From Lytechinus pictus (Eukaryota): a DNA stretch of 64,000 nucleotides. The stretch lies in the NCBI RefSeq assembly GCF_037042905.1, contig NC_087246.1, positions 8,308,001-8,372,000 on the forward strand, written 5' to 3'. Position numbers and translations under genes: made by a program. Under the pieces are notes generated by a model, which was not told the DNA's origin, ran no database searches, and worked only from the letters and a program-made list of their open reading frames with translations. This document shows, in pieces, positions 7,705 through 46,800 of this stretch (positions are counted from its first letter, which is position 1; the number at the start of each line of letters is the position of its first letter).

Positions 7705-9528
7705 GGGAACACACCCTTTCGTCCAAAGCCCCCCACCATTTACCAAAAGGGCGCGTTTTTCATTTCAATGAATTGCAACCAATTCGTCTAATATAGCCTT
7801 TGGTCTAAAGCCTTTTTGTCTAATACCGATTTGGTTTATTGTCATTTGGTCGAATTAGTATCAAATGGTGTAAAATAAAATCAAATTTGCATAAATTTGT
7901 CCATTGTTCAGTTCGTTTAACCAATCCAGGGGGACAATGCCATCCCCCTCCTAAATGGAGAGAGGAGAGAGAGAGAGAGAGAATGAAAGAAAGAAAAGAG
8001 AATAATAAAATAAAGAAAAGGGGGAAAGAAGGGAAAAGATGAGAAATAAATATAGAGAACAAATCCAGGGGGCTGAAAGGGGCATTGCCCTCCCCCCAAA
8101 AAAATATATATATACATATAAGAAATTGCTGCAAAAGGGGGAGATAGAGAGGAAAGAAGAAGGAGAAAAAAGAAAGATGTGATAGAAGAAACGACAGAAG
8201 ATAGAGAAACGGATCCAGGGGGTGTATTGGTATACCCCCAAAAAAAATTAAAATGAGAGAGAGAGAGAGGAAGAAAATAAAGAAAGGGGGAATAACAGAA
8301 TTAAAGATAGAGAAACAGATCCAGGGGCCGGAGAGGCAATTCTCTTCCCCCCCAAAAAAATGAATAAAAAATATCTAAGAAAAAAATAAACTTAACTTAT
8401 GATGATGAAAAAGAGAAAGAGAAAGGATAATAAATTTCTTGCTTTTTGAGTTTTTTCAAAAAAGATTACCCGTGCCCCCCCCCCCGCGAAAAAATATTTG
8501 TACGGCTATGCCCCCCCCCCTCTTTCTTTCTTTTTGTAGGGGGCAGCCTCCAGCCCCCTGGAACCGCTACTCTTTCTCTTATTCTGTTCTTTCCTCTCCC
8601 CCTTTTCTTCATTTTCTTCATGTTCCCTCCCCACCCCTCCTCATCTGTCTGTCTCTCTTTATTTTTTTTCTGCCTCCCGGATTTTTTTGTCTATCTTTAA
8701 TATTGTTCTTTCCTCTCTCCCACCCTTCTTTATTTTCTTCCTTCTCTCTTATTACTATTATTATTATTATTATTAATATTTTTTAATATTTTTTTTTGGG
8801 GGGAGATACCCCTCCGACCCCTGAATCTATTTCTCTATCTTTAATTCTGTTCTTTCCTCTCTCTCCCATCTTTCCTTATTTCCTCCCCTCTCTCTGTGTC
8901 TCTCTTATCCTTTACATTTTTTGGGAGGATGTCCCTCAAACTCCCCTGGATCTGTTTCTCTATCTTTATTTTGTTCTTTCTTTTCTTTCTTCTTCTTCCC
9001 TCTCTATTTCCCACTTTCCAAGCCATTTCTTATCCTTTTCTATATGTCTGTCTGTTTTTTTTTTTGGGGGGGGGGGGGTGGTATGGGAAGGCCCCTTTCA
9101 GCCCCCTGGATCTGTTTTATATCTTTATTTTCTTTTTATATAAATAGATATCNNNNNNNNNNNNNNNNNNNNNNNNNNNNNNNNNNNNNNNNNNNNNNNN
9201 NNNNNNNNNNNNNNNNNNNNNNNNNNNNNNNNNNNNNNNNNNNNNNNNNNNNNNNNNNNNNNNNNNNNNNNNNNNNNNNNNNNNGCATTGCCCCTCTGGC
9301 CCCCTGGACTGGTTAAACCAACTGGACAATGGACAAATTTTTGAAAATTTGATTTTATCTCAATAAGACCTAATGATAATATCAACCCAAATCGGTATTA
9401 TACCAAATTGTTATATTAGACGAATTTACTATAATAATAATTGTAGTTCATCATAATTAAAAAATAAAACAGCCTTTCGGCAAATGGGAGGGGGGGGGGG
9501 GCTTTGGACGGAAGTGACGTGTGTTCTC
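7705..9528. mobile_element. Foldback-type non-autonomous DNA element with long imperfect TIRs
   Basis: GGGAACACAC..CGTCCAAAGCCCCCC at left matches the reverse complement at 9490-9528, with about 240 bp of inverted homology. Purine-rich left arm and pyrimidine-rich right arm carry ATCCAGGGGG units. Spans the N gap. Confidence 0.65.
9153..9284. other. Assembly gap (132 N)
   Basis: Run of N. Confidence 1.
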
Positions 9529-10491: not shown

Positions 10492-10812
10492 ATGCATTCA
10501 AGGATCCACATTCCTCGAGGGTGGTTCATGAATGATTTATCAATCTGCAAAAGCACAACCTTTTATTCCCTTTCTTCTAAGCGAAAATATGACTTAGGAA
10601 CGTCTTCTAATTCTGCCGCAGCAGCATCTACCAGTACCAGCACCGGAACACAACAACAGAGTGCGCCTGAACCGCAGGGCCAAAAGTTCCAAGTACCCCC
10701 GTTCAAGAGAGCTCAGCGAGGGGATTTCTTTCAAGAACAACCTCGGCTTGGCAATGTCTATCGTGAAGATGCAGCATTGCAGTCTTATTTGAACAGATAC
10801 ATTTCAGATGAG
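10492..10812 (+). CDS. acdh-11: ACAD exon 1
   Basis: ATG...[22 protein letters not shown]; donor GAG|GTATGT. Confidence 0.85.
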
Positions 10813-16800: not shown

Positions 16801-19800
16801 AATCTGATGAGATGTTCTTTAAAAAAATGTCAACATCACATTTATTTTCTTATGTATTTTATTGTTTTTTCAATGGAAATATATAGTCAGGGACTATATT
16901 TTGACCATAAACAAGGTGAAATTAATTGATTTAAATCAGTAAAAGGGAAAATAATGGCATATTTATAAATTATGGCTAAAAACACTATTTGCATTAGATT
17001 TGTACACAAATTCACATTTTTGAGCAATTTTGGGTCTGCATGCATGTACAAAATGTTGCGTAATTTCGTAACCGCATGCCAGGGGGTCGCAATTTCTGTC
17101 TCAAAAGTTGTGTGAGACTTGAAAAAGGAAGTCTGAGAGTGACGTGGTAAAAAAATTTGCGCAGTGGATTTATCGCAAAAAGTGACGAAGGGGGCTGAAT
17201 CAGCCTCCCAGTCTTATTAGGGTTTAAAAATACATTCTATAGGCCTACTGATTGTTCTTAATATACATTTGATCAGAATTCCTGAATTGAAAAAATAAGT
17301 AGTTCAAGGGCTTTATTTATAGATTTGTATTTCATGCACTAAAATTGGTATAATTGATTCAAATGAAATAAAGCATATTGATTTACCGCTAATGAAATTA
17401 AGCTTTGAAACCCCATGTACGTCAATTTCATCCATTGTGCAAATTCTCCTGCCCCCCCCCCTCGATTGACAAGACTCAGTATACCTCGGGACTACATGTA
17501 TTAGGAATAAAATGTCAAATTACTTATAAGTGGGTTTTTTTGTAGGCATTCAATTTCCATGATCTAGTAATTTTTGGGGAAATATGAACTTTTTTGTTGG
17601 AAATTCATTAACTAAATTGTGGTCATCTCTTATTTAAAACATCAAGAGCTTAAATCATACTGTATTTAGTGTATATTTTAATTGATTCACAGAAAATTGC
17701 ATCATTCGTTGGAAAAAAACGTTTTAAAACGATTTAAAACGTTTTAAAACAATAAAAAACGTTTTATTTGTTTTTTTTAATAAAAAATGTTTTTTATTAC
17801 AACCCTGAAAAAAATTCAAAGCTAAGATCAATCTTCCAAATTAAACCCAGTTAAAATGCTTGGGTTTAGAGCATTTTTTGTCTTTACCCCACACCCAGTT
17901 CTTTTAAAAATACAAATTAAGTGAAACATAATCATAAAACTTAGACCCCAGCATCTTCCAAACTATAAAACCCTGTGATAACACATACTTAGTTTTACCA
18001 GACAAAAGAAACAGAACAACAAAACCAACATTTAAAATTAAAACCCTCTTCCAGCCTAAGATCCTGTAATAAAGATTAAAAAAAATAAAACATACCTTTT
18101 CTTCAAGGTAAAGAAATTTCTAATTAAAAATGAAATCTTCAAAACAAAGAGCCCGGGGAGCATTTCATGAAAGGAGTTGTCAGACGTTTTATCCGTCACT
18201 TACCATGGTACCACTGCTTCTTAGCCAATCAACATCAAGGAAGGTTGTCAGTTCTGACAACTTGTCGGACATAACTAATGTTGATGAAATGCTTCCCCGA
18301 TCATCTCATTCATGTTAAACAGGCACAAGAACATGATTGAGTCTTAGTTAAATGAAGATTTCATTTATCTTAATTTTGAAAATGACAAGGTCTGGAATAA
18401 AGAAAACTCTCTAAACCTTTATTTTATTACAGGTTCTTAGTTTTAAAGATTGTTGGGTTATATTGTATTGTTTTGTTATTTTGGAATAATTGGGTCTGGA
18501 AGAAAGACTACGCCATGTCTCCATGTTATTCAGCATTATAAAGAAAGTGGGGTCTTTGTTACCTTTTTTCACTTTTTTGAAAATGGTTTGTAATTTTGAA
18601 ATAAGTGGGTGTGGAGGGGAGACTACACTATATTTACATGTTTTTCAACATCAATAGGATTGCGGGGTCTTTGTTTTTTTATATTTGGTTTGGTATTTTT
18701 TTATTTGTTGTTTGAAATATCTGGGTCTGGAGGAAAGACTGCATTTAACAGATTAAAGTGTGATTGCTATAAACCATAGAGATGTATACTAATTACGCTA
18801 GAGTGCGGAGTCGCCATAGGCGCGCGTACTTAACGTTTGTGATTGCGCGGAGCGTGGTCGGCCATTGCTCGATAGGTCTAGATTTGCAGAAGTACCCGGA
18901 TGTAAACATAGCTCGTGGGTCAAAACCACTATCTCGGCGCAATTGCGTCAAATTCGTGTCCCGCATGTTATGGGTCCAATTAAAAATAAAATCGATATAG
19001 AATGGTCGAGTTAAGCTATTCTATTTATTATATGAGATCCATTCTTTAAAAAGAAAGTCATATTATTGACCTTCTTTTGGTATATAATGAGAAATTAGCA
19101 AACCCATCCGTTGTAATAGTGAAAAACAGCGTGTCGCCGGTCATATATTTTCTAAATTTCTGTATCTTGCCAAAATAAAGTAAAAAGCAACTGCCCTAAA
19201 ACTAAATTAATATGCATATAAGTGATCCCTCCACAAAATACAATCAAAAGTTTTTGATAAAAATGTTTTGTTTTCACATGCGGATAAAACCAAATGTGTC
19301 GCCAAATGTAGTGAAACTTACGTTACCGTATTTTAGATCAATAATTAATTACTTTTTGTCATCGTAAATATGTTTATTTTTATTTATTTGACACCTCGGG
19401 TATATGATAAGAAATGATACTTATGTACTCCCATTCCTAAGTAAGAATAATCTTATCAAAACCAAACTAAATGCAATTTATAGAAACGTAGCGTTAAGAG
19501 ATGAAACTTACGTTACCGTTTTGGGGTAATGTGTATAGACCTTAGATGCTGATATGTATATCAGCAGTTAGCATTGATAAAAGGAAAGTCAGAGGGCCAA
19601 CGAAATCATACTTGCAAAGAGCAATTTTGGATCAGCAACTATTTATATACCCCATCATGTAATTTACGTTATGAAACTTACGTTACCGTATATGCAGACC
19701 TCGGCCTTTTTGGCGTTAAAAGAATTTTTCTCGATATATAACAAAGATGAGCCATCTACGATCATTCTCAGAAAGCCTAGCAACAACTTTTTCAAGTCTA

Positions 19801-22800
19801 TGGTGGATCTCGTCCCATTTTTCTAATCCCTTGCATCAGAGGCTGACTAGTAAGTATTCAATTTAATCAAATTTTTTAAAGGTTCTACTCCCCTAAATAT
19901 TTGAGTGTATTTTAGGTGCAACCATTAGTCAAGGGCTTCTTAAGAAGTGCTAGAAAATCAAACAAAAGTTTAAGAATGTGAAATTACTCTTCAATCAATT
20001 TTTTATACCTTGATAGCTAGTAATAATAATGTAACGTACGTTTCAACTCTAGTAACGTATGTTTCAAAATAGAAGTTGTCCCATACATAGATGATATAAG
20101 GGGATTTAATCTTGCTAATCGTAACTTTATGTTTATAATAAGCTAGTACTACATTCAATTTCATTACCAGTGGAATTTCGGGAACAAAAAAAAAAGAAAA
20201 AAGTACAATTACTATCACTTCAAGCATTGTTTATGTTCCGTTCAACTTTTATTTTCATGAAATATTTAAAGATAAAACTAGCCCTTTAAAAGATTCGGTA
20301 TTTTGTTACACTGTCTATACCTTTCTTACATTAATACTTGCCAATATTCTTCATAAATAAGATCTCTCTCAATTGGTTGAATTAAGGTATATAACAAAGT
20401 TCATATGCTAATATTTTATCCACCTCATTATAGTAACGTAGAATTCAAATTATAATAACGTAGGTTTCAGGATTTGGTACCGAGTTTTGAATACTAGTTA
20501 AGATTTTTCCCAAGCCCATGATCAAATTCTATTTTTCGCAATATAAAGGAGGGGCGTATATCGGTTTATCGAATGTATTATTGTTGATTTCCTTCCCCCA
20601 AATTTCTTTTATATATATCAATTTTATATAATTGCCTTCTTAAAAAAATAAATATATATATATACCTTAATATTTTTGTAATGAAAGAGAAAAAAACTAT
20701 AAATAGCAGTATAAGGCATATTTGTGTAAAGAAGTTGTTGATATCAATTGATAAACGCGACACCTTTTAATAAGATTTGGAATATAATAATGGCATTTCC
20801 CCTGCCCAAAATGGTAACGTATGTTTCAAGATTTCATAATTGAAAACATAACATACAATATAACCTTTCTCTTTTTATTTTCCCTAAAGGAATGGCTAGG
20901 AGCAGGGCTGAAATTCAGGCTGCTTACAGGCAAAGGAAGCGGCAAAAGATGGGGGAAAATGCTTACTTACAAGCGGAGAGGCAGAGGGTGAAAAAATACT
21001 ACAAACCGGTGGATACGCTCACAAAGAAGAGGGTCCAAGAGAGAAGAACGCAAGTAAATAGAAGAGTACGAAAGCATAGAGATCGAGTTCGTCGGGTAAG
21101 ACAGGAAATGGAACAAAGAAGAAACATGAACATAGATGACGTCGGATATACTGCGGATGACGATTCTGCTATCTCGGACATATCCCCTGACATATCTAAC
21201 CAGTTAGGCCTTACTATCAAAATGCCATTCCAAAAGCCAAGAAGAAAACGAGTGAGTAGGTGTTTGAGCAAGGCTCATAGAAACATTGAACAGCTCACAC
21301 TGAAACTACAGGCGGCAAAGAAAGACAAGACAAGACTAAAGAAAAGGTGTGAGAGGCTGCAGAATAAAGTCATGACTTCAATGCCAACAAGAAAAGAAGT
21401 TAAGAATACACCGCGATCCCGTACAAACTCTCAGCTAGAAGATGAAGGAATAGATCCAAGCCGTGTTCCTTCAATCAGAAAACGATTGTTATTCTCCAAT
21501 GCAATGATGGAAGAGATTCAAGGTTCTTCTAACACAAGCAGAAAGATGTCTGATCGCCGGATTCTTCACCAGCTGGTAGCTGGATCAAAGGTTCTGAAGA
21601 AATACCGCCTATTAAAGTTGCTCCGGACGGAAACTGGATTGGGGAGACGTAACCTTTCGAAGGCAAACAAACATACCAAATCAACTCAACAATCACGACC
21701 AACCTGGACTTCTCTCCATCTGGAAGTAGTAGAATTTCTGCACAGAGATGATGTATCACGTATGTGTCCGGGAAAAAAGGATTCAAGCAAGGGCAAAGAC
21801 GGAACCAAGTGTCAGAAGAGGTATTTGACTGATTATCTGTCTAATCTTCATGAAAGGTATCTGGCAGAGACCGATGGGAAAAGAAAGATATCATTGTCAG
21901 CATTCAACCGCGTGCGACGAACCCTATGTCCTCACATTAAGCGTGTCCAGTTCGCCTCGAGAGATCTTTGCCTTTGTCAAAAGCATCAGAATGTTGCATT
22001 GAAGCTCAAAGCACTACAATCACTAGGGGGAACTGTAAATGACAACCCAGATGAGTTCATTAAAGAACATAATGAAGCTCAGGTAGATATTCTCCTCAAC
22101 AACTTGCAGTCAGAGCAGATCCAATTTGATGAGTGGTCAAGGGTTGAGGTAGATGGGAGAAAGAAAATCAAAATCATCCGCATATCTCAAAGTAAACCTG
22201 ACTTTATCAAGCGCTTTCAGAAGGAGATCCAAGAATTCAGGCAACATGTTGTCAGAATCAAAAACCAATTCAGAGCTTTGCTAGATTGCAAGAATTCTTT
22301 GAAGCCAGATGAGTGCATTATCCAGATGGATTTTGCCGAAAACTATGTCTGTGTTCCACTTGAAGAGGTCCAAAGCGCCTACTGGTGTCAGGATGGGGTG
22401 ACACTTCACCCAATTGTCGTGTACTTCCGCAACGACGGGAATGAACTAGTTCATCAAAGTTTTGCAGCTGTGTCTGATGACAGAAATCACAACACTTCCA
22501 CAATACTGGCAATACTCACCAAGCTCATGCCAAAGCTCAAAGAGCTGATACCCCATCTCCACAAGGTTCACTACTGGACCGACAGTCCTACATCGCAATA
22601 TAGGAACAAAACAATGTTTTCGTTGGTGAGTGAGCATGCTGATATCTTCGACGGCATACATGCTCAATGGAACTATTTCGAGAGTGGCCACGGGAAGGGT
22701 CCGTGCGATGGGATCGGGGGTACCATCAAACGTCTTGCAGACACTGCAGTGAAGAGACGGGCAGCAGTTATCCAAGATGCCTACGACTTTTTCGCCTGGG

Positions 22801-25800
22801 CCTCACAAGAACGCCACGAATGCTCAGGTTCAAAGATCAACTTCTTCTTTGTAGCCAAGGGAGACTGTGCTGCAGGAAGTCTTCTCATTGCGGAGAGGTG
22901 GTCCAGTGTGAAAACCTTTCCTGGGACAATGCAGATGCACGCAGTGATTGGCCATGACAATGGAGTTCTTCTCAGAAAGTTGTCCTGCTACTGTCAAAGC
23001 TGCTATGGCAGTCGGGAAGAAGGCCAAGTTGAAACGATGTGCGAAGGGTGGAAACACAATCGTCTCCTTTATCGATCGACTACCATGTCAACAACAGGTG
23101 CTTCTGTTACACCACAGAGTCCAAGCAACACAAGCATGTCTGAAAATGATGAGTCCTCACCAACAACCAACGAAGCGTCCTCGGGTACATATGGTGTTGA
23201 CGACTGGGTTGCTGCAGTTTATGATAAGCAGTGGTACATTGGCAAAGTCCTCAAATTTGACTCTTCTGATATTCATATTGACTTCATGGCAAAATGTTCT
23301 GGTACCCATACAGGGGGGAAATACAAATGGCCTGTAAAAAAAGATGCAATATGGGTGGCATGGGACAAAGTGTTGTGTCACATTACACCATGCTTTTGTG
23401 ATACTTCTCAAAGAATTGTCACTTTATCTCCAGAGCAGAAAGCTCTGATCGAAGAAGCCTTCAAGGCCGTTGTCTGACTTCATAGATCTTTACTGGAATG
23501 ATTCAAAAGGGGTTTTAATTTTTATGGGTTAATTGATTAATTGATTTCCATATAAATCATTGGCCATATGTTTATTGTAAGAGCTATAAGAAATTAATAT
23601 CACACATGCAAAACTAGAGTTAGGCCTACGTATGTGATTAAGTTGTAGGGATATCAGATTGATCTGCTTCCAGTCTTAGGGAATTAATATTCAAGCATAA
23701 ATAATTGATATGTGAGTTATCTTCAACTCCCTATTATGTTCCTCATCATATCATGGGGGGTTCATTTCTTCTTGTTTTTCATCTTGTGTCTACTTACTGC
23801 AATCTCCCTTTTCCTCATTTCATCTCTCTCTTTCAACATTAGGTTTTATGGTTCATCCACAATTTCAAATCTTAAATGTTAGCTGAGTTAAAATAATTGT
23901 TTTACATTGTCAGATATTGAAGTTAAAATACGTTACTCTTTTTAAAATAATTTTATTACAAATTTTCGCTATGTAAACGTAATCAAAATTTGCTAACAGA
24001 AAATGGGGAATTGATATAAAAGTCATCGGGAAAATAAAGGTAACCACGTTTTGATGATCAATCACATTTCCATATGTTTGACGTATAGTTGATCTACAGT
24101 GCGTCCCAAAAAAAACTATACACTTTTGAAATGGTTGCCAAATAAAAAATATAGCATTTTGGGGGAAATAACTTATAGATATGGAAAGCCAATAAAGTCA
24201 ACTTTCAAGTGAACTCAAAAAGTTCGAAAACTGCTCATGCTTGAGCGAGCACTGCCCGCTGAAACAAAGGGTATGAAAATTAGGGTGGGCTGGAATTAGC
24301 CTTCCAATTTCTTTCAGGTTTTTTGTTTGGTACCTGCAAAGTTGAGGGTTATTTGGTGAATTAAAGATCAGTTGTGATCAGTTTGTTGTTTGTGAAAATT
24401 TAATGCGTATTAAATTGAATTTATTACATTGAAATTTAATGCATGAGTGATCATGAATTGCAATTTTTAGTGCAGCATTTTGTCTTTATCATGTGGATCT
24501 CAACAATGTGTTTATGAAAGTCAGGAGAAGAGGGGGTAATATGACTTAGGTAGGTAAAGTACGTTGATGTGATAAAGGTAAACAGAACATTTAGCAACCC
24601 CTCCCTCCATCTCACCCCCCCCCCCCCCCCCCCCGCTTCTCTCCTCCTCAGACACTAAGCTCGGCTAGGCTGGGCAGGAATTATCCTTACAGTTTTTTTG
24701 AGTGGTTAGTCCTTTGGAACTTGCTAAGCTAAATTAATGAGTGAGATAAGTTTTGGTTTCTTAGACAAATTTCATGAGTTACTAAATTGAAATTTAATGA
24801 ATGAGTGAACAGGAATTGAAATTTTAGTGTAGCATATTCATCTTGTGGATCTCAGAAGTGTGTTCGTGAGAGTCAGAGTAATGTGATGGTACCTGTTACA
24901 AGCAAGAGGGCGAGATATGCTAAGACTTGGTTAAAAGGGCATTCCTCTTCTTTTTGTCCTTTTGCAAATTAAAAGTCATAATTATGTACCCTTCCCTCTC
25001 CACCTCCATTTCCCAGCCCCCCCTCTCTGTCTCACTTCCTGGATTGTAGCCTATTCAAAACTTAGCTGCCAAGTGACCGATGGCTTATGGTCACTTTTTT
25101 ATTGAATTATTACCAAGAAATTTAATGATTATGATGATTAATGAAATGATTTATTGAAGAAAAAAAAATGAATGTTTGATTGATCACATTGCACGAGTTG
25201 ATTTACTGATAAATTGTTGATGAAATGATTGATAGGAAAAAGTTGATGCCCCAATTCAGAATTAATCATTAAATCAACATTCCACTCTTGGACTTCACGG
25301 GTACATGACAATAGCCATCAGTCTCTCAACAGGAGGGGAGGGCGGGAAAGAGGGAGGGGGAGGGAGCTGAATGTTCTGTTGACCCTTATTCCATCAACCT
25401 ACTTCTCCCACTTAAGTCCTATCTCACCCCCTATTCTCCCGACTCCCATGAACACACTGCTGAGATCCACATGATAAAGTTTAAATGCTGCCCAAAAAGA
25501 GATCCAAATGATAAAGTTGAAATGCTGCCCCAAAAGTGTAATTTGTGTTCACTCATGCATTAAAGTTCAATTTAATAATTTATAAAATTTGCATAGGCAA
25601 CCAAAGCTGGTCACGGTTGATCATTAATTTATCACAACGCCCTTAACTTTGCAAGTTCGAAAGGATTTGCCTCTTAAAAACTGACATAAATTGGAAGGCT
25701 AATTCCAGCCCACCCTAATTTTCATACCTTTTGTTTCAGTGGGCAGTGCTCGCTCAAGCATGAACAGTTTTCCAACTTTTTGGTGTCATTTGAAAGTTGA

Positions 25801-28800
25801 CTTTATTGGCTTTCCATATATGTGAGTTTTTTCCCCCAAAATGCTATATTTTTTATTTGGCAGCCATTTCAAAAGTGTATAGTTTTTTTTGGGACGCACT
25901 GTATAAGTGTTATAGTTTATTCACAATTTCAAATTGGTGTTATAGTTCTTTCACACTTTCAGTATTTCATACCTTGGTAAAGTTCAAAAAGACAAATTGT
26001 TAAATTTTAAAGTTGCAATTTCTTGGTACATTGGTGTTATATTTCATCCAAGCTAGCAGATTTTTAATGTTAGTTGTGGTAGGACAATTGTTTAGCATTG
26101 TCAGATATTAAAGTAACATACGTTACTATTTTCAAAGTAACTTTATTTCTACTTTTCACTCTTTACATTTAATTAAAATTGCAAACAGAACGAGGGAGTT
26201 GATATAAATACCATTTAATATCTGAAAACACAACTGACCCCGCGTTTTGATTATCACTCACACTTCCACACGTCTGGCACTTTACATTTGAATATAAAAT
26301 GCCCATATTCTGAGCACCGTGTAATCTAAATTTCCCGTGGATTAAAACCATTTTGTGATAATAGTTGGTCCATTTTGTTTCATGATATTATTTGAGAATG
26401 TAACCAATCAACTTTCAGTTATTTTCGTGCATACAATTCTAAACCTTCGTAGTTATTTTCAGATTTTTAGAACATGTAATTTACGTTACCTTTCATGAAA
26501 CCTACGTTACCATATTTAATGAGACAATTACATATTACATGCTGCCCGTTCGTTGAATTTGATGAACATCCTGTAAAACTTAATCATTACATGACTTTAT
26601 AAATGTTTAAATCTTACCTTTATCTTTCAGATTTATTGTTCGAAGTAAAAAGATACGATTCGTGATTTTGACAGTCAAATTTCTTTATAGAAATTAATGT
26701 TTTCAAACTTCAATTCCCCTCAGTGGTTTTCGCAATCAAACTCAAGGGAAGTAATAGACCATTATCGTACAATTTTTGGCACCAAATTGATTATTTCAGA
26801 AGTGGCAAATTAGTTCTACTCAATAGAAATAGATTTCACCACGACTATTAAAGGTGTAATGCTCTGTAACGTAGGTTTCACACTGAATTATACATGTCAT
26901 TACGAAAACGTGAAAATTTAGTCAATCAGCAAAATTCAAAAGCCAATAATCAACGGATATTAACTTGACAATACATGCATTCTTTTCATAATAAAATGAT
27001 ATGTGTTGAACAAAGTTTATTTTTCTGATTTGTTGAGTTTCCAATTGCGCCGAGATAGTGGTTTTGACCCTCGTGCGTTGTAACGCTGTGAAAAAGAAAA
27101 GAATCCAACCTCATAAATCGAAAATATTAATGAAAAATTGCATCTCAATTAACTATTAGTGTGATTACATGGGGATTATGCTGTGAATTTGGCATTTATA
27201 CCTGACTTCTCGGGATGAAATTCTCTTATATAATTTTTGCATTTACCTCTCTGTTTATAGGCCTATTTTAGATAATAATAGATAACAATATTCATTATAT
27301 CAGATAAAATAAAAAATATACAACGTACATTAATGGAAAGATTGACAATTAATTCAAAAGACAGTGAATTAGCCAATCTTCTCCGCTGGATATCCCTACC
27401 TTTAACTGCATCGTCCTTTTCCACATTTCCTTCATTCACGTCACTTGATGTTCTCATGACCAATTTGTTTATGTTGGATCCTGGGTGTTGGATATAATAT
27501 TTTTATTTCTATATAGGCCTACTATATGTAACTTGCTTTAATTTGTAAAAAATATATCATTAACAATAATTTGTATAAGTTAGTGTTTTGATCTTTGATT
27601 ATATGCACTATTATAATAGCAAGTATAGTATAAAGCACTGGCGTAAATCCGTGTTGATGGGTGGGGGGATGACTGAAATATTTTGGCATTTTTTTTGCAA
27701 TCATGTTTTTAGATATGCAAGGAATTGTCATTGATATGTCCACAGTGGCGTACCGTGGGTCACGGCATGGGGGGGGTACCAGCAAAATTTTTGAATCACT
27801 GAGTGAGTGCGCTAGTGAGCGCGCGAAGCGCGCTCAGTTGCCAGTTATACTGACCTAATAGAGACATTTTAAGGACAATGTCATTAAACGGATATGTATC
27901 TCACTGATCAAATAATGCGAGCGCGAAGCGCGAGCTTAAATTTTTTTATATTCACACCTAAAAAGGGACATTATAATCAAATTAGTGTAATCACGATAGG
28001 TATCTGTCTCGCTAAACAATGCAAGCGCGAAGCGCGAGCTGAAAATTTAGATAATTCAGACCTGAAGTGGGGCATTCTAAGGTTTCTTTGTAGGAATTAT
28101 TAACTAGGACCATACGTATTTCATTAACCAAATGATGCGAGCGCGAAGCGCGAGCTGAACATTTTTGATATTCAGATCAGAAGAAGGGACATTTTAAGGA
28201 CTGATTTTAGGAATTCATGAAGAGCAGACATATCTCACCAATCCACTAATGCGAACGTAATCACGGACAGGAAATGTTTCATATATACGAAGACCTTAAC
28301 ATGGGGCAATCACTTTTTGAGTCATGAAAAAGAAGCATATGTCACTACATAAAACAATGATAACTCAAGTGCTAGGAAATATATTTGGTTTATATTGACT
28401 TGAAAACGGGAGGTTTTAGTACAACAGGATTATATATCTCGTTAAACAGACAATGCGAGCAGCAGGAACAATGAAGACGTAGGCCCTGGGCAAATTATGT
28501 TTCATAAAGTTATGATAAAAATGTTTCTTATGTAATGTAACATAAACATAATTCTAATATAATATAACATTATAATGAATAATATTTTCTTCTTTCCCAC
28601 TACGTTTCTCTTCCTTTCTCCCTCTTTTCTCCTTTTCCCCCCTTTCCCCGTTTTTTTTTTTGTCAGCCGATGGGGGGGGGGGGATGTGCCCCCCATGCCC
28701 CCCGTAGTTACGCCACTGTATGTCCATATGGCAAATACCCCTCCAATATTATTATCTTTTTTACCCCATGATGGTTTAATGGTTTTATTAGAGCTAGATT

Positions 28801-31800: not shown

Positions 31801-34800
31801 TAATTTAATTTTCTCTGCAATTGAATGCTCCAGTCTTCATGGTCTATATGTATGTATGATGCATAATTCACCTGTGCTATTATTTTGAAAAGATTTATTT
31901 CCCAATTCATCATAATATTTGCAATTTTGTCATAATTTTCTTTTTGAAAATTATGCTATTTTGTGACTAAGGCTACGTCTCGTCTGCTCTTTTTACCGAT
32001 AGTATCGATATCAAGGTATTCTAGTTAGGAAGCCTTTCGAGAAACAGGTTTAGTAAGATTGGAACTAACTCCATGGTCGGTGGATAAAGATATGACTAAC
32101 TTGTCCATGTGTTGAGAAACGGGCCCCAGGATGCTGCACTAACCATAATGTATACAAATGATGACCAAGTGAGTGCAAGACTCTTTTGAACTTCCATAAG
32201 TCATAACTCTCACATAAGATGCATCTTTTTACTTGCACTAAGTTTAGTTTTGTTCAACTGCACCAAATGTCATGTGTTTTTGTGATTGCGGTCTCAGCCA
32301 AGTACGACTATACTCTGTAAAGAGGACTGTACTCAATGGAAGAAGAAGAATTTCATTATCAATTTTCATGAACCATTTTTTGAAGAAGAAAATTGCTTCT
32401 TTTAACTCTTTCCAATATGGCAATAAGATTGATTCTCTCCTTTGATTAAATGGAACAAGGGTGCTTGCACAATTTTTGTTTATTCACAATGATAGAGATT
32501 CAAATTGAAAATTATGATTTACTTTGTTTGCAGGCAGCGCTGTCACCCATTGAAGATGACTTGGATAATTTTGGAGAGCGGGTGGGGGAGGAGATTGAAG
32601 CCCTTGGGAACCAGTGCGAGGAGAATCCACCTTATGTCAAGCACTTTGATGCATGGGGGAATCGTGTGGATGATTTAATCACATGTGAAGCATGGAAAAA
32701 ACAAAAGGCCATAGCAGCTGAGGAAGGGATCGTGGCTATTCCATATGAAAGGAAATATGGATCTTGGAGGTAATGCTTTTAATTGTGTTTTTAAGTTAGC
32801 AGTCAGGGACCAAAATATGGCATCTAGAAGTAAAACAGTGTTCTGTGTGCTATATAAATGGGCTAATATGATTATGTTCTTGAGAAGTGTATCATGGCAA
32901 GAATGCTAGATGGAGTAATCTGGAAAAAATTGAAACATTGCATAACGGAGGAAAGAAAAAAAGTGAAATTGGTCACATGAGATCAGATATGACCTGATCC
33001 ACCTTTGACCTTTGTTAAAAAAAAGGAACAAACCAAAATACAAATTGTAAAGCCTTAATCAGTGAAGCATTAAAAGTAAAAAAGATCATGTTTGAAGGTT
33101 TGCAAGGTGATATGGACGATCGCCGAGTGAAGATAGAGCAGGAGAGGGGACTCAAAGTTCCGGCAGATTAACTCTCAGATCCATGAAGACAGGACAGTCA
33201 ACCTGCTTGAAACGTCAAGTCTTCTGTTTTGCTCCTCTCTACAACTCCACCTGCCGACTCAAGCCAGCCTCCTCTTATCTCTCCAACTTAAGTCAGCATT
33301 ATCTCAAATACTCAAGCCTATCATCTCTCAAACTCAAAGTAGCCTTCTTTTCCCACTACTCAAGCTTCTCAAATTTTTCTGATTTATAGTCCAATAAGGA
33401 TAACACTCTATAACAAAAGAATACTCTACTTTCTAACCTCCACTTTCTTGCCTGTCCATTTCACTTTTAACTCTATCCCATTTTCTGTAGTCCTTTCCAC
33501 ATGGTGTAGAGTAAACCACTTCCACTTCTGCAAAAGTCAAGAAAAGTGAAGATTTGTCTGATCAATCGACAATTGTCTAAATTAGTCTTGCATGTGACAA
33601 GGCACTTCTTTTATGGAATTTAAGAAACCCTGCTGGTATAACCTCAGAAGGAAATCACACACTTAATGCATGTACATGATGCCTTCTAATGTAGGTTATC
33701 ATAATAATTAGGGTCTTCACATAAAGATATAGATATTATGGTCCAAGCCATGTTTTGCAATATTTCTGAATACATATCTGTACACTATGATTTTTTTTGT
33801 GGGTTTATATTTTATATGGTTTAATAAATTGAAATTGAATTGAATACATAATGTTCAACGTGGGTTCGATTACCAGTCATGACGTGTTTTCCTTAGCAAG
33901 AAATTTACCCACATTTTGCTGCACTCAACCCAGGTGAGGTAAATGGGTATTGGCAGAAAGTAATTCCTCATAAAGTTGTGAGCACCGGAATCGGTAGACT
34001 ACATGTAGCTTAGCCGGGGTAATTACATGTAGGAGTGCCTTGAGTACCTAACAAGGTGGATACATGATGTATGTGCACTATGTAAATTTATTCTTATTAT
34101 TGTATAGCCTATAAATGTACTATCGCAATATAAGTTAGCACTGAAGTACTCGAGTTCTTATTATTCTTGAAATTTAAAGTTCATTTTGATATTTTGGTAA
34201 AATCATGGAATTCTTCATGAGTGACTTTTTTGAAAAAAAATATTCCTTAAATGCCAAGAATAATTTTGTTGCATTGTGCGAAAATTGTATAGGCCGATTC
34301 CATGGTCAGTCGCATAATACACTAATACTAAGCCCTACATACACTTTTTTTTCTAGACCTACTTCAATAAATAGAAGATTATTTTTCTAGATGTGACACT
34401 GTTTGGTTGCAGGAGTCACTATACCAGGCCTGCTTTGTACATAGTCCTATCATTTAGTGATTCAATGTCAACAATACCTTTCTGTTTTTATATATTAGTG
34501 TGTGATTATATTCAATAGAAATGCAGGTTGCAGTTAACCCTTGAATCGTTAGAAAAGATACTGTTCAAAGTCACTTTGGTGACAAAATATTTATTAGGGA
34601 ATAATTTTGCTTATCAAATTCGATTAATAATTTTGGCAATAAGAGAAGAGCTCTCCTATAAGTTCTGTACAGTCCTATCTAAAAATCTGCCATACAAAAG
34701 GCTTTTTGTTGACTTTAAGAATATGTTGAGCAAAATGTACAATGCGATACCAGGAAAATTATTCCGTTTATAATAATAGTGATAATAGTAATTCATTTTA

Positions 34801-37800: not shown

Positions 37801-40800
37801 CAATTCCAAGCCCATCTTCAAAGAAGCTAGCTGCTCTGTCAGTCCGGCAGTCAGGCAGTTTAGTCAGTATTCTAAGTTTAAATTCGGTTTCTCCCTGTTG
37901 AATGGGGTTTGCTAGATTCAACTCTCACATCATCACATATCACACTACATCCAAACTTTATTATTGTTGTTATTTATTACCCCCTCCCCCTTCACTTTGC
38001 ACAATTCAGTGCATCCTCCTCCATCAGCCCACCCCCTCTCTTTCTAGTAATGATGAATTTTTGTTTGAAGTTCAGCATGAGAAATATACATGAACAGTTG
38101 TGTAAACATAACAGCTTTCCTTCAAAACTTTCTCCTTTATATAGTTGAATTCTTTTAATTTTCTATATAGCTGGTGGAACAGAAACATTGGCCTACCCAC
38201 AGAACGATGGATCCTTCAATCTCCATGGTTACAAGTGGTTCTCGTCAGCCACAGACAGTGATATGACTCTAACTTTAGCAAGAATTGTAGATGATGATGG
38301 CCAATATAAAGAGGTTTGTTCTTTGCTCCTTGCATGTAATTTTGAGATTGATAACCAGTAGTTGCCATTATAGACCTGTATATTTGAGTGTTGATTATTT
38401 AAGATTTCTTGAAAAGGGTCAAAGAATTTAGGGGTCATCATCTAGCATGAGTTCAGGTCACATAATTATGGTCAAAAGTAATTTAGGATCAATTAATTTT
38501 GACCATGTTGTATCAATATCCAAAACTTAAACCAAGGTTAAGATTTTGAATTTTCAAGATAATTTTGAAAGTTGAAGTCCCTATTCCATGAAACCTACAT
38601 ATTTTATAATGGTTATCAAGTAAGACAAATACTTGAATGGTCATAAGGATGAGATAAATGAACTGGTATCAAGTTAAAAAAAAAAATTATCTAAAGTTTA
38701 TGTTGAAATATAAGTCTTTATTATATTTCATATTTAAACTTTGACGTATTTGTTAGAGGTATATAGATGAGTATAATTTCAGGTTACTTGTTTAAGGTCA
38801 AAGGTCATATCAGATGAATTAACTTGGATAAGAATTGTTATTGTGTAGATTATATCTCAAAGAATTATTTTTTCAAATTATTGAAATTCAAAGTCAGCAC
38901 TACTTGCTACATTGAATCGCATAATGAAGGCGAGGCTGCTTAGAGATTCCACGTGTTATTACTTTTGTATAATTGTTTTCTTTTGTGAAAGTATTTTCTA
39001 CTGAACAGTAGATGCAGTAAATTATCTTCTTCAAATTATGAACCAAGGCTTGCTATTCATTTAGTAAAAAACTGTAAAATTAGAAAGAACAGAACCTTAT
39101 ATAGCAAGTGTTGGATCACCATTTTTTTTCTTAAAGGAGAATGAAACTCTTGGAGCAAGTTAGCTTTTGTGAAAGCAGAAAAAACAAAGAATAAGATCAA
39201 CAAAAGTTTGAGTAAAACAGGACTAGCAATAGAAGAGTTATGAGCATTTGAATGTCGAGATCACTAATGCTATGGAGATCGTCCCATTGGCAATGCGACC
39301 AAGATCTATGATGTCACAGATGAACAACTCTCCCCTTTTGGACACTGAAAATATACCCCAAAACATCTCTTTTTGCTCATTCTAATCATATGACAAACGA
39401 TTCATCAATGATATAATGTTGTGAAACCTCTGTACTTGTCCTCTCATAAACAGAACACCTCACCTTGTGATAGACTCTATAAAAGTGAGAATATAAGTGA
39501 AATAAGTACTAAAGTAATGAGGGAGTTGTACGTGTGTGACATCACAGATCTTGGTCGCATTGCCAATGGGAGGATCTACATGGCATTAGTGATCTCAATA
39601 TTCAAATGCTCATAACTTTCTTATTATTCATTCAATCTTCCTCAAACTTTCAACAATATGTTTCTTTGATTTTTCTCTTTGATATGGATTCAGCTGGTTT
39701 CAAGGGTTTCATTCTCCTTTAAGTTTACCCTTGTACATGTACATGTATGTTGTATTCTTAAATTGCAATGACCTTTGGTAGCATTCATGTGTGCATGTGA
39801 TACAGCATTCACAGTTAGTTTGAGTTAAGCCTACTTAATTGTACAGTATATACTACACTGCTTTCCCATTATTCATCACTATAATGTGATATCACCTATT
39901 AATTTGCGTGCATAGAAAATGCATAGTACCAGTAATGGCAATTGCTTCCTACGCAGGGAAACTGTAGCATAGAGATGTTTTATGAGTCTTTGTTTCCATG
40001 ACGTCCTTCAAACATTTGTTTCATAGGGTACCAGAGGGCTATCTTTGTTTTACCTTGAAACTCATACAGCAGAAGGTAAACTGAACGGTATAGAGATACA
40101 CAAACTGAAGAACAAACTTGGCACCAGGCAACTTCCTACTGCAGAATTATTATTAGATGGGACTAAAGCACATCTTGTAAGTACACATATCATCTGTTTC
40201 ATAATGTTAAAGGACTTGAATTTGCTAGTAATTGGTTGAAAATATAAAATTATTCTCATTTTAGTTGAATTTGCCTCTTTGATGTCCAAGGGAGATATTA
40301 TTGTCGAGTTATTTGCTCATTTACACCTCATATCAACACATGTATGGTACTTTTTTGTAAACCACATTAGGAGATCAGTTTTCAGAAAAAATGGCCCATG
40401 GTTATAATATTGATTAGTATCACACATAGACATTACACCCAATTGCACACAGGTGGCGACTCTTTTTTTTTCACATGGGTGGGAATTTAAATGAAATTGT
40501 ATTCAGAAAGCACATTCTTAGTTTTAGAGTGGTTATTCTTCTGTGGAGTGAGACAATATTTTGGGGTATTATCTTGAAATAAAAGTTTGGATTATGATAA
40601 TCCTTACATTGTTGAGAGAATTTAAAAAATCATTTTCAAAATCAAGATTTCATGTAAATATTGGAACTGCGTTTGTTGTATACCAGAATGCTTCTCAGAA
40701 AGAGGCTCTGCTACAAAGTGAGAAGTGAGCTCATGGCTCACCTCACCAGCTTGAGTTATTGTAGGGGGGGGGGTTAAAATTCCGTTGCCTTAAGGATTAA

Positions 40801-43800
40801 ACACCGAGACTGGTAAGTGGCTCTAGGGGAACCATTGGATAAAGAGATTTTCAACCTCACCAGTTTTATATGCTTCCTTTGTCTGGTGTAGATAAGTTTT
40901 GAACACTGACAAGCCGCCCCACAACCAACAATTAGGCAACCAAAATGAATATTGAGATTTTTATTGAGCTTGAAAGGAACTTCTTAAACTTTAAAATGCT
41001 ATTCAATAAGCCTCATAATTATTTTATTTAATGCAGAGGATACTCAGCGTGAGCTTCAAACATAAGGAGAAAACAAGGTTTGAAGTTTAGGGATCACTGC
41101 AATCCCAGTGAAACTTCCAAGCAGTGTGAAGAAAACGGTGTCAAAGAAATCTTGTATCTTTTCTATTGTTCAACATTACAACTTATATTTTTACGGTTTG
41201 AAGTAGAAGAATTGCTTTTTCAGATTTTATAAACTAATTTCTAAATTTTCCTTTTGAAGACCAAATTACTATTTTGGCTATTAACAGAAAACCTTCCCTG
41301 GTGACTTGATGGTTTATGGGTGGCTGGTCACAATTATGCAAGTGTAAGAAATGACATGGACAACAGCTCTGGCAACAATGGTTTAGCTTTAATCAATGTT
41401 TTCTATTGCAATTTCTTTCACAACATATTTGAGTAAAAGAGTTGCCAGAGCTATTGTATATTATATGATTTCTTACATTTATGTACATGTGTATTTATTC
41501 ACTCTTGTACTTGTAATATACCGGCATGTATTCAGTGGTGCATTCATTTAATCAAGTATTTATTCCTTCATGTTTTTATACGCCCGTCCTACAGAACGTA
41601 TTATGGTAACATGCTCGGTGTCCGTACATCCGTCCGTTAACTATTCCTTGTAAACGCGATAACTTAACTTAACCTAAGCTCATATAATTTGGTGTGTATG
41701 CAGGCCTTTGTGTATCATGAAATGATTAGTGTCCTAAAAGGGATAGGAAGGGAGGGAGACCAATTTTATTTTAGATAGAGACAAACAGAAGGAGAGAGAT
41801 ACATGTACACATGTAGAGTTAAGGGGGGGGGGGGGGAGTAGGCGCTATATAAAGGTCAATATACATTTATACATATATAATATATGAGAAAATTTTTTAA
41901 ATGGGAGTGTTTATTGCAGGGAGAAAGACCATGCAATGATGAGGAAGAAGGAGAACATAAATATACTTGTAAAGGAATGGAGACAGGGAGAGGAGAAGAA
42001 AGTTGAACAAATTGACGAACGAAAAAAAGTAAGAAGAGCCACACGCTCTTTTTAATACAATTAAAATCAGCAGTAAATACTAAAATTGATTAAAAGCTGG
42101 GCATGTCTGTCACCACTCAGGTAATGAATGCCACTGTGCATAAAGCACAAGTCAAAAGAGAGACAAGGCCAAAAATAAGTGGTGATGATTCGATTAAAAT
42201 AGTGTAAATAATAGATGATTGCTGCTAGGCATGCATTCATGGCTTCCCAGACGGAATGAATGCTAATGTGAATCATAGAGCTCTTTCTTGATGAATTGAT
42301 GTCTGTGTTATGTGTTTCTCTCCTTGCTTGAATGCATGTATATGTATTGAAATGAACCATATCATCTACCAAAATTGATAAGGATGTTCTATCAATTTTG
42401 AGACATGTACTGATGTTTCATTTCCAATTTTGTAAAATATTTCCAGTTTCCATTAGATCTATCTGTACTAAGTTCACAATTTTGAAAAGCCTGTCCTAGA
42501 CGGGACTTATTATGCTATCACGCTCCGTCCATCCGTCTGTCTGTCCATCCATTAACTTTTCCTTGTAAACGCGATAACTTTAGTTTAACTTAACCTAGGG
42601 CTAAGCTCATATAATTTGGTGTGTATGATACTAGCATGGATCCCAGGAAGCCTATTGATATTGAGGTCATAAGGTCAAAGGTCAAGGTCAGAGTGACATG
42701 TTTTCATTTTACCCGTTTGCAGTCCTTGTAAATGCGATAACCTTAGTTTAACTTCAATGCAATTCCATTGATTTTGAGGTCAGAAGGTCAAAGGTGAAGT
42801 CGCCACCTTCCACTCTTCTTGCTTGACCAATATCTCCATTTTCTGCTTTACAGGCGGGCGTATTATTTGCTCGCCTTAGCGACACTCTTATTACTAATTG
42901 ATGTATATTTTTGTGTTATCATTAATTTATATGTTTATTATACATGTATGTATTATTAATGACAATGATAATAATGACAATGATATATTCACCCTGGGTA
43001 GCCACTTTAGTTCATGTCTGTATGATTTCATTGTAAGTCATGTTTTTATTCACATCATTTTTCGCTCTGCAAGAGTCTGCATAACAATTCATTGTTATCT
43101 ATTCATGTATCGATTACTACTCTGATCATTATAGGTATCTGAACCAGGATACGGTGTTTCCACTATCACTCCCATGCTGACAGCCACGCGCTACCACAAT
43201 GCATCTCATGCTGTAGGTTATATGAGAAGGTGAGATCATCAATTGGATGTTTTTTTTTTTTTTTAGGTATCCAAACCAGGGTTTGGTGTGTCTAACATCG
43301 CCACTATGCTGACCGTTAGCCGCTTCCACACTGCTATTATGGCAGTAGGTGCAATGAGAAGGCAAGTTGAATTAGTTGGGTCTTTGTTTTCCCATTGTAG
43401 GTATCTGAACCAGGGTATGGTGTAGCCTCTATCTCTCCTATGCTGACTGTTACTCGCTACACCAATGCAGCTAATGCTGTAGGTGCGATGAGAAGGCAAG
43501 TTGAAATACGACTTTCTTTCTGAACAGCCTGATTATTGCCTTATTGACCATCAAGAAAACCCAAGCCAAGGGAGTAATGTTTTGTACTGATTTTCAAATT
43601 TGATTTGGAAATAAGCAGATTTTTATTGCAATAAAATCTTTTTGTTTGCCATTTTTGGTGAGCAAATCAGAATTGACCCTTATCTTGATGAAAAAATGCT
43701 ATATTAAGGCTAAAGTTGATACATTTGAATTGATTTCATTTTCATGAAATAATTTTGATACTCATTGATATTGATAATTCCATCATAATTATCATGAAAT

Positions 43801-46800
43801 GTATTGATAATTTATGAAATTTCTAAAAATTCACTATTATAAGTTTTGAAATCTTTGAGTTGTGAATCGAAACACGGCACAATAATAAAACCACAGATGA
43901 ACATGATTAAATTTGTAAACTTCGTAAGTTGGATGTATGAATATAAAGGGCATCATGAAATTAGGCAATAATCACATTCTGCAATCATGTTATTTTAAAT
44001 TTATTACAAATAAAAGCCACTTTGTTGATACAATAAAACCATATATTGCTCATTCTTCGACAGGGTAAGCATATTAGGTATGTCATGTATTTTACATTAC
44101 CCAATCAATGGAGAAAAGGCGTGCTATATTGTGACATTACTCAATTCCGCTAGGCCATTTTCCAATTGTTTGCGTGAAATAAACAAGCAGTACAATGCAA
44201 AGTGCAATGATACTATATGATATAAAGAGCTACGTGCAAATGTCATTTCAATCAAAATTATTTTTGGTTCTCTGTTTTTTTTAACTGAAAGCATTGCTGT
44301 TGTTATGAAAAGTGGTAGTTTGTATAATAATGATATTGGATTTCTTTTGTAGTATATCAGATATATTGTATTCATCAGCATTAATATTACATTCGTCTAT
44401 GGTACGTGCAATTAATGGAAAATATGTGATAAACCACTCAAGTGCATCCACTATTATATAGGGCCTAAAGCATTCAAAAGGCCTCATGTGTTTGGATAAT
44501 TGATAATTTGAATATTACCGAAAAAACTCTACGATATTCTTTTTTTTTCTTGTATGGACCTGTAGGATGATGCTCAATGTGAGAGACTACTCGTTCAGAA
44601 GGAAAGCATTTGGGAAGTTGATTGTTGACTGGCCTCTTCATGTACAAACTATGAGCAGAATGGAGGTGAATAAACTTAATTTCATATTTAACCATTTGAT
44701 TTCTTAATTTTCCATTTCCCATCAAAGTAATCAGTGATCAAGTGTGGAAATTCTTTGTTGTAATATCTGCTATTGGCACATTGACTATTTTTCTGCCTAC
44801 TGTAAAATACAAATGATTATGAACACTTTGTTACTCTTTAGCTTGGATGTGATGAAAAGAATGTTTTAAAAAGAATATATGAATAATCATAAAACCATAA
44901 ATGCTACCGGTGAATTTGAAAACCACCTTGATGTATAAGCCACAATACTATATTTTGTACTTTTTGAGTATGTTTTATAACTCATTTTCATTGTTTTGGA
45001 TTTTTGGCGAGTGTAGCAATCACCATATGAAAAGTGGAAATGTGTTGATGTTATAATTTAAAAAGAGCAATGTTTCAGCATGAACAGTATTTATTGTCGT
45101 AATATTCATGATATTTGTTTTCCATTCACATGTACAATTAGTCATTTATGGTAGTAGCAATGTTATTGACTTATACATAACTGAAAAAAGACCATTAGAT
45201 TTGATCAATTTTATGAGAAAGACATCTTTCATAATTTCTATGTTCATTAAAGTGTAATTGTTGATTCTTGATATCTTGTTATAAAAATTCTTGATACATA
45301 TTGATATAATAATAATAGAAATCTCTATCTTTTGTAGGTGGAGACAAGAGGAGCCATAGCTCTGCTCCTGGAATGCTCCCATCTCCTTGGCAAGGAGGAG
45401 ACAAAGGAAGCATCTGAGGATGATCTTAACCTTCTCCGTCTTCTCATCCCAGTTGTCAAACTCTACACCGGCAAACAGGTTAGGTACCCATACGATAAAA
45501 TGAATATTATGTGTATATGTTTCACCTTGCATATGCCCGTGATCCAAGCTACATGCAGAAGTTATGAATTGATGCATAGGTTTGAGGTTCATGCACTGGT
45601 CATGTATTTCAGATGTTGATGGTTAAGGTCAGTCTCCAGACATAAATAATCATAGCTGATTGATTCATGACTGCAAAAACTCAATTGCACTCACATATGG
45701 AGTTTGGAATTGATAATATCCCCTTGTTATATTGTCATTGAACTTCATTGAGTTGAAAGAGATTAATATTGTTATCAAATATGTTTTTATTTCAATTATT
45801 CAATTGTGAGTTTGATGGTAGGTTAATTTTGTTCTTTGATTGAAGGCCAAGTACAAGTGAGTTGTTTACACTTGGCAGATTATGGACTGAAAAACTGAGT
45901 CCTGAGGGAAATAGTTTGTGTGAATCCGCAAAGCACATGAAAAAATGCTATTGAGCCATTGGTTTTTGCGCAACGTCATCATATCCTTTAACTCTTGATC
46001 AATTATTTTGTGCAACTTGAATTTTTACATTGAAGTTTCAGACTTCTCATGCTCATTTACATGTCCTCAGGTACCAAAGTATTGAAGGAAAACTGAATTT
46101 TATGATTATTTAATAAAAAGTATTGTAATTTATTTGCCCATGGGTAAAAGAATAAATCGTTTCACAATATCTTTTTACTATGACACAAGCCAGTAATGAA
46201 GAAGAAACTCAGAATAATATTAAAAAAAGATTTTCCATTTGTAGAACTAGGCATTTACAGAATTGGCAAATTTAGGATAAATTAAGATTACAAATCAGCT
46301 TAATGATGTATTTTTCCAGCTTTTCCAGGACTTCAGACATTATTACCTTGCTTTAGCCCATCAAACTTACTAATATCACACACACATTTCAAGGGATCAA
46401 TTCCTGCCATAAATAAATAATGTACTTTCATATTTTTGTCATTGTGGTTGGGTGCCTTCAAACAGTTAACTTTTGCTATTTGCATATTAGATAAATCTTT
46501 GGCCATATAGAAATTGCACTTCATCTTTTATTTTTATTTTGCAGGCTGTTAGCATTGCCTCTGAAGGTCTAGAGAGCATTGGTGGACAGGGTTACATAGA
46601 GGATACAGGCCTCCCAAAGATACTCAGAGATGCTCAGGTAAGTACTACCACTTGTGTGCTTATGATAAAAGTATTTAATAATGTTGGAATGTTCCACCAC
46701 TCAACTTCAGGCAATTATTCAATGTAGTGTAACACCATGCTCAACCAATATTGATTGCCCCAGAACAAAAAGTAATCATTTAGTTTGTTTTAGCATGCTT

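Follow-up and report, generated by a model that had tools for sequence, protein, structure and literature searches.

Steric exclusion between neighbouring splice sites is a textbook mechanism of mutually exclusive splicing, known from alpha-tropomyosin, from let-2 and egl-15 of Caenorhabditis elegans and from about 9% of human clusters. The steric block between exons 2 and 3 of alpha-tropomyosin, in which the branch point lies near the upstream donor, was reportedly described by Smith and Nadal-Ginard in 1989. Here we examine a window of 64,000 nucleotides (nt) from the sea urchin Lytechinus pictus (assembly GCF_037042905.1, contig NC_087246.1, positions 8,308,001 to 8,372,000 of the forward strand), in which an ACAD11-like acyl-CoA dehydrogenase gene contains three tandem 95-nt exons, designated 7a, 7b and 7c, separated by spacers of 37 and 39 nt. 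An original prediction, made from the DNA letters alone, had proposed that these spacers enforce exclusive use of the exons by steric exclusion. All L. pictus coordinates are those of the window.

Among the closest described systems, C. elegans has five exclusive clusters with intervening introns of less than 40 nt that are never excised, these being egl-15 exons 5B/5A (14 nt), let-2 exons 9/10 (30 nt), bet-2, gly-5 and gly-6 (Kuroyanagi et al. 2014, PMC4165533). In human, 57 clusters (9%) show potential steric interference (Hatje et al. 2017, PMC5740500). PMC7969005, drawing on its references 34-36, places the steric threshold at approximately 50 nt from donor to branch point for joint placement of U1 and U2.

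The urchin cluster resembles the C. elegans clusters, which are mostly tandem duplicates, in that the intervening intron falls below the smallest workable size and adjacent homologous exons would be unjoinable. The five nematode clusters consist, however, of 3n exons with no back-up from nonsense-mediated mRNA decay (NMD), whereas the urchin exons are 3n+2; those five, as named, are exon pairs, whereas the urchin has three copies and one non-adjacent join that is sterically free; and two of the urchin copies, unlike the nematode exons, carry GC donors. Normal introns also differ greatly in size, at approximately 47 nt in C. elegans and an average of approximately 1.7 kb in urchins (the Strongylocentrotus purpuratus figure). 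As in alpha-tropomyosin exons 2/3 and OGDH exons 4a/4b (PMC7969005), the donor-to-branch-point distance is below about 50 nt and U1 and U2 should not assemble jointly, the branch sites being predicted ones in the urchin. Whereas the alpha-tropomyosin and OGDH introns exceed 200 nt and owe the block to an unusually remote branch point, after which come a long pyrimidine tract and an AG-free zone, the whole urchin intron is 37-39 nt, with the predicted branch site at a normal distance from the acceptor. The human clusters share the criterion, a donor-to-branch-point distance of less than 50 bp, and often have exons of non-3n length. The human cases are predictions from computed branch points, whereas the urchin argument requires no branch-point prediction because the entire intervening intron is shorter than 40 nt.

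We consider it probable that the locus is a cluster of three tandem mutually exclusive exons in which the exclusivity of neighbours is imposed by spacing and the remaining wrong combinations are covered by an NMD-type back-up. The cluster is a clean addition to the instances of this mechanism known from mammals and nematodes, and ranks among the cleaner natural cases of exclusivity by spacing, given an intervening intron of less than 40 nt where introns of the genome typically run to hundreds or thousands of nt. Three features meet in one small cassette, namely a probable steric block for neighbours, a frameshift that guards against the non-adjacent pair, and the GC donors of 7b and 7c. Our literature search found no paper on this gene's exon cluster. 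The understanding of mutually exclusive splicing is unchanged by the cluster, and its isoforms are already present in RefSeq.

Anatomy of the exon cluster

The cluster comprises the following features, in which a slash marks the exon boundary.

43135-43229, + strand: exon 7a, 95 nt (3n+2); acceptor CTCTGATCATTATAG, donor AAG/GTGAGA; 100% identical to L. variegatus isoform X1
43230-43266, + strand: spacer 1, 37 nt; GT donor of 7a, 14 nt, T15 tract, AG acceptor of 7b
43250-43264, + strand: T15 polypyrimidine tract of the 7b acceptor, beginning 21 nt past the 7a donor
43267-43361, + strand: exon 7b, 95 nt; donor AAG/GCAAGT (GC type); used alone in XP_063964740.1, counterpart in L. variegatus isoform X3
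43362-43400, + strand: spacer 2, 39 nt; GC donor of 7b, pyrimidine-rich part, AG acceptor of 7c
43401-43495, + strand: exon 7c, 95 nt; donor AAG/GCAAGT (GC type) at 43496; counterpart in L. variegatus isoform X2

Re-reading of the sequence reproduced both spacers to the nucleotide. Spacer 1 consists of GTGAGATCATCAATTGGATG followed by T15 and AG, and spacer 2 reads GCAAGTTGAATTAGTTGGGTCTTTGTTTTCCCATTGTAG; each contains, as had been proposed, a donor, a pyrimidine tract and an AG, although the donor of spacer 2 is GC and not GT. The three exons all begin in phase 0, maintain an open frame and encode related 31-residue peptides. Their nucleotide identities range from 68 to 81% (65/95 for 7a and 7b, 69/95 for 7b and 7c, 77/95 for 7a and 7c), and tandem homologous exons of equal length and phase, each with its own splice sites, are what defines a mutually exclusive cluster. 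The only two GC donors of the gene are those following 7b and 7c, both AAG/GCAAGT, which apart from the GC at +1/+2 is close to a perfect donor, and thus belonging to GC-AG introns; the former is needed in the reconstruction of a L. pictus RefSeq protein described below, and the latter is used by the model of L. variegatus isoform X2.

Single-copy use in transcripts

Exons 6 and 8 flank the cluster and are common to the transcripts considered here.

40027-40176, + strand: exon 6, common upstream exon, 150 nt; XP_063964740.1 reconstruction, RNA joints 40176>43135 and 40176>43267
40177, + strand: exon 6 donor, GTAAGT
44566-44665, + strand: exon 8, common downstream exon, 100 nt; XP_063964740.1 reconstruction, RNA joints 43229>44566 and 44665>45338

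Three RefSeq isoforms of L. variegatus, each of 657 residues, differ only within residues 361-387 and carry exactly one copy of the exon apiece: 7a in X1, 7c in X2 and 7b in X3. In L. pictus, RefSeq holds one model with 7b (XP_063964740.1) and an older second model that starts inside 7a, and no RefSeq isoform of either Lytechinus species shows double inclusion. Three raw RNA-seq runs and one contig set were mapped to 39950-45650, with joints accepted at a threshold of 1% and 3 reads; depth over the cluster was 1-5x, the gene being weakly expressed in those samples. The joint of exon 6 to 7a (40176>43135) was present in five reads of run X7, in three reads of run X8 and in a contig of set X1 at depth 35, and that of exon 6 to 7b (40176>43267) in three reads of run X8 with three distinct start places. 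Joints of 7a to exon 8 (43229>44566) and of exon 8 to exon 9 (44665>45338) were found in a contig of set X1, and 7c was represented by approximately one read (run X7, bin 43388-43578).

The RNA reads thus show single use of 7a and 7b, with 7a as the main form in the RNA examined. Taken with the three L. variegatus isoforms and the 6-7b-8 model of L. pictus, they bear out the premise that a transcript takes up a single copy. All three copies are found singly in mature mRNA, 7c within L. pictus through the approximately one read. No 7a-7b, 7b-7c or 7a-7c joint was listed at the threshold and depth given, nor was any joint indicating double inclusion or full skipping, products that would be expected to be unstable.

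Spacing of the splice signals

As a rule, splicing uses the first AG that follows the branch point as the 3' splice site. For the 7b acceptor, the closest preceding AG is at 43233, within the 7a donor, and the sole AG-free stretch is 43235-43264; for the 7c acceptor, the closest one is at 43374. Because of these AGs, the branch sites would be confined to about 43235-43247 for 7b and 43370-43374 for 7c, predicted zones that lie 8-17 nt from where the previous donor starts. With the next copy's branch site only 8-17 nt past a donor, assembly of U1 and of U2AF/U2 across the spacer would be unproductive. The whole spacers, at 37 and 39 nt, are in any case within the published distances, these thresholds being mammalian (approximately 50 nt) and nematode (less than 40 nt). 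Neighbouring copies are therefore almost certainly too close for joint splicing, and steric exclusion appears well supported by this geometry.

The spacers are also far below the normal introns of the organism, on the introns sampled. None of the approximately 40 introns that could be placed reliably in this gene across L. pictus, L. variegatus, S. purpuratus, Diadema, Patiria and Antedon is shorter than 165 nt. The further introns of the L. pictus gene had been put at about 270 nt or more, in agreement with the smallest in the reconstruction of XP_063964740.1 (268 nt). The mean intron of S. purpuratus is 1753 nt (PMC3460201), and mean values were all that our literature search found in respect of a minimum intron length for sea urchins.

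The branch points of 7b and 7c had been suggested to overlap either the upstream donor or the upstream exon. The first of these is likely in view of the AG-free zones, and a branch site adjoining or overlapping the upstream donor is the arrangement to be expected for 7b and 7c. A position inside the upstream exon is unlikely, given the 5-7 intervening AGs. The CTGAC motifs noted in 7a (branch A at 43180) and 7b (43312) do exist; as candidate branch points they lie 86-88 nt before the next acceptor with 5-7 AG dinucleotides between, and they correspond to invariant Met-Leu-Thr codons found also in species with a single copy of the exon, which makes them unlikely branch sites.

The mechanism that we propose would have begun with tandem duplication of a 132-134-nt unit, giving the three-copy cluster, in which each spacer would hold one copy's donor followed by the next copy's only room for a branch site, its pyrimidine tract and its AG. 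With the U1 small nuclear ribonucleoprotein (snRNP) at the upstream donor and U2AF and the U2 snRNP at the next acceptor, no productive assembly should form across the spacer, and from the geometry and the published thresholds the 7a-7b and 7b-7c joins would be blocked. The 7a-7c join, through a 171-nt intron, would not be sterically blocked, and its frameshift to an early stop would expose it to NMD. The default choice among the copies would probably be set by the mix of splice sites. As read from the sequence, the acceptor of 7a is modest to weak (CTCTGATCATTATAG) and its GT donor good; 7b combines a pyrimidine tract as strong as possible (T15) with a GC donor, and 7c a good tract and acceptor with a GC donor. 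This mix fits 7a as the main form and suggests that splicing from the 7b and 7c donors requires assistance.

Several points weigh against exclusion by spacing. A YTNAY branch motif is absent from both spacers. Validated animal introns of 30-40 nt include one of 30 nt in human MST1L and one of 35 nt in Tribolium (PMC4675715), such that 37-39 nt is no absolute lower limit. Exclusion of 7a with 7c is beyond the reach of a steric block, as that join spans 171 nt. A spacer of 37 nt is a small target for insertions, and its continued shortness is weak evidence of constraint. Comparison of L. pictus with L. variegatus was uninformative as a test of constraint, identity being 97% throughout. Lastly, an RNA depth of 1-5x would miss 7a-7b or 7b-7c joints that are rare or depleted by NMD.

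Injected reporter constructs are feasible in L. pictus. Reporters with lengthened spacers could show directly how short an intron the spliceosome of a non-vertebrate deuterostome can handle.

Frame effects of wrong combinations

On translation, the combinations 7a+7b, 7a+7c and 7b+7c, triple inclusion and skipping of all copies each led to a frameshift and a stop in the second copy or in exon 8. The proposed 171-nt length of the 7a-7c intron was correct, and the join shifts the frame to an early stop, as anticipated. Retention of spacer 1 gives AGG TGA, an immediate stop, and retention of spacer 2 leads out of frame into 7c, with a stop there. Every premature stop is followed by four or more exon junctions, for which reason the wrong products would be expected targets of NMD; it is the stops that were computed, and removal of the products by NMD is the expected outcome. 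As is characteristic of NMD-backed exclusivity with non-3n exons, every wrong combination places a premature stop before later junctions.

Alternative explanations

The short spacers could instead be the leftover of the 132-134-nt duplication unit, exclusivity then depending on competition among splice sites, the GC donors of 7b and 7c being weak, and on frameshift with NMD of any double inclusion. The beginning of spacer 2 is almost identical to that of the intron following 7c (GCAAGTTGAATTAG compared with GCAAGTTGAAATAC), indicating that a short flank was copied with the exon, and since the exons are 3n+2, NMD by itself could suffice to catch every error. Of the 19 non-3n clusters of C. elegans, 14 depend on NMD (PMC4165533), and the clusters with too-short introns are all 3n and have no help from it; where NMD is possible, as in the urchin, a steric block is not strictly needed. 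Nonetheless, the donor and the next acceptor's elements overlap physically whatever their origin, the crinoid spacers described below stay at 50 and 53 nt despite changes in spacer sequence and in the length of the neighbouring intron, and origin and present effect are not mutually exclusive alternatives; we regard the leftover explanation as unlikely. A somewhat smaller chance attaches to the spacers being spliced at some rate as ultra-short introns, with the double-inclusion mRNAs unseen through NMD. Validated introns of 30-40 nt occur in a few animals (PMC4675715) and the RNA depth was too low for rare or unstable products, yet no such joint appeared in the three raw RNA-seq runs and the contig set, neither Lytechinus species has a RefSeq isoform with double inclusion, and spacer 2 would have to be a 39-nt GC-AG intron without a branch consensus. 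Introns of less than 40 nt between exclusive exons have also never been observed to be excised in C. elegans (PMC4165533), where normal introns are far shorter.

Least probable, and in our estimation very improbable, is a choice of copy made by something other than spacing, either competing RNA pairing between a docking site and selectors in the style of Dscam exon 6, or U2/U12 incompatibility. Insect clusters of more than two exons often rely on docking and selector pairing; nothing in favour of such a choice was found here. In the urchin cluster, folding was no better than that of shuffled sequence (z = +0.57), the inverted repeats within 42900-44600 were only short and AT-rich, and the spacers leave no room for selector sequences; Dscam-type docking and selector elements are thus not indicated by either the folding or the inverted repeats. 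As for U12 signals, there was no ATATCC/GTATCC donor and no TCCTTAAC motif, and the donors GTAAGT, GTGAGA, GCAAGT and GCAAGT are of the U2 type. A GTATCC or GTATCT sequence, similar to a U12 donor, does open each copy, but on the acceptor side, where it encodes conserved Val-Ser. Recursive splicing at AG/GTATC was also considered and rejected, as the regenerated donor CTT/GTATCY would fit the consensus only at +1 to +3.

Relatives, origin and age of the cluster

The layout is kept in L. variegatus, where the copies lie at 15254-15348, 15384-15478 and 15518-15612 of locus L004, the spacers are 35 and 39 nt and the donors are GT, GC and GC; the T tract of the 7b acceptor is interrupted there and 2 nt shorter than in L. 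pictus. Identity between the two species is 97% across the whole region, flanking introns included, and the shared layout thus shows inheritance rather than constraint. Intron 6 is 2958 nt in L. pictus and about 5427 nt in L. variegatus (L004), and the intron from 7c to exon 8 is 1070 nt compared with 1622 nt, while the spacers differ by 2 and 0 nt. The exon is present as a single copy in S. purpuratus, Diadema antillarum and the starfish Patiria, and no intermediate urchin species with the cluster was found among the urchins of the protein collection (Lytechinus, Strongylocentrotus, Diadema and one further transcript).

Elsewhere in the echinoderms, this exon forms a two-copy cluster in two crinoids, whose RefSeq isoforms differ only at this point. 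The crinoid spacers measure 50 nt in Antedon (3388-3437 of L005) and 53 nt in Anneissia (6137-6189 of L006), the middle of the spacer having diverged between them with insertions and deletions, and the intron upstream of the cluster is approximately 165 nt compared with 608 nt, sizes that are approximate as they derive from tblastn segments. This comparison provides modest evidence that a short spacer length has been maintained. The brittle star Amphiura filiformis has one good copy (21217-21311 of L007) and decayed fragments; immediately before the functional copy, at 20880-21140, come three incomplete copies of the exon, truncated and decayed. The exon seems to be prone to small tandem duplications in echinoderms.

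A peptide variant, MLT.SR.HT, is shared by the alternative exon 7b of Lytechinus (43267-43361) and the first crinoid copy (3293-3387 of L005; 6042-6136 of L006). It also occurs in a separate, paralogous gene of Diadema (protein P0302), and most other animals sampled have MLT.TR.HN. The variant could be either an old echinoderm one that was repeatedly lost, or a convergence.

Synonymous divergence of the urchin copies was approximately 0.4 between 7a and 7c, 0.6 between 7b and 7c and 1.0 between 7a and 7b, over only 24 sites. The copies would thus be old enough to have been exposed to insertions, although a 37-nt target is small and the evidence correspondingly weak. The starts of the copies are 132 and 134 nt apart, and 7b and 7c are followed by nearly identical sequence over the first 14 nt, marking the edge of the duplication unit; the cluster thus arose by a tandem duplication that took in the exon and hardly any of its flank. 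The short spacers may accordingly be a by-product of how the copies arose, with their mechanical consequence unchanged, and the proposed mechanism enforcing exclusivity may be an effect rather than a selected design.

A broader reading, which we put forward tentatively and think rather less likely than not to hold in full, is that duplication of a very small unit (the exon with approximately 37 nt of flank) makes exons mutually exclusive from birth, because the donor, once copied, would overlie the branch site of the copy that follows. A spliceosome committed to one copy would then occlude the neighbouring one, forming a chain of occlusion in this three-copy cluster, and the GC donors and the T15 tract might offer regulators the handle of a three-way switch, in which T15 could be both the pyrimidine tract of 7b and a U-rich enhancer for the 7a donor. 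The short-spacer clusters of this exon in crinoids (50-53 nt) and Lytechinus (35-39 nt), against a single copy in Strongylocentrotus, Diadema and Patiria, might then represent a recurrent, possibly independent, solution at a single exon.

Gene and overall exon-intron structure

Protein searches with the last large exon, and two follow-up searches, identified the gene as an ACAD11-like acyl-CoA dehydrogenase of the AidB/ACDH-11 type, involved in fat metabolism. The matched proteins were animal "acyl-CoA dehydrogenase family member 11-like" proteins with the Pfam domains AidB_N, Acyl-CoA_dh_M, Acyl-CoA_dh_1 and ACDH-11_C, and the exons of the window were 89-100% identical to those of L. variegatus isoform X1. 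The L. pictus RefSeq protein XP_063964740.1 was rebuilt residue for residue from the window along the path 6-7b-8, which needs the GC donor at 43362; the exact match confirms L. pictus as the species of the window. The introns in this reconstruction are 2221, 720, 1713, 3090, 1204, 672, 1066, 298 and 268 nt, and introns 1 and 2 of the gene are 21721 and 2236 nt. Further features of the gene are as follows.

10492-10812: exon 1
32534-32769: exon 2
43496-44565, + strand: intron from 7c to exon 8, 1070 nt

The L. pictus RefSeq models of the gene are partial (464 and 286 residues), though exons 1 and 2 are present in the window. Intron 1 (21.7 kb) includes a Sola2 transposon, called at 18917-27070 in the first reading of the sequence, and the whole L. 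variegatus gene occupies only about 20 kb. Two parts of intron 6, 40900-41300 and 41480-42900, drew large numbers of RNA reads and contigs, whose alignments showed mismatches, loose ends and unusual joints other than GT-AG; these stretches look like expressed members of a repeat family, outside the mRNA of this gene. Upstream of the gene, amid low-complexity repeats, a run of 132 Ns at approximately 9150-9280 marks an assembly gap or masked sequence.

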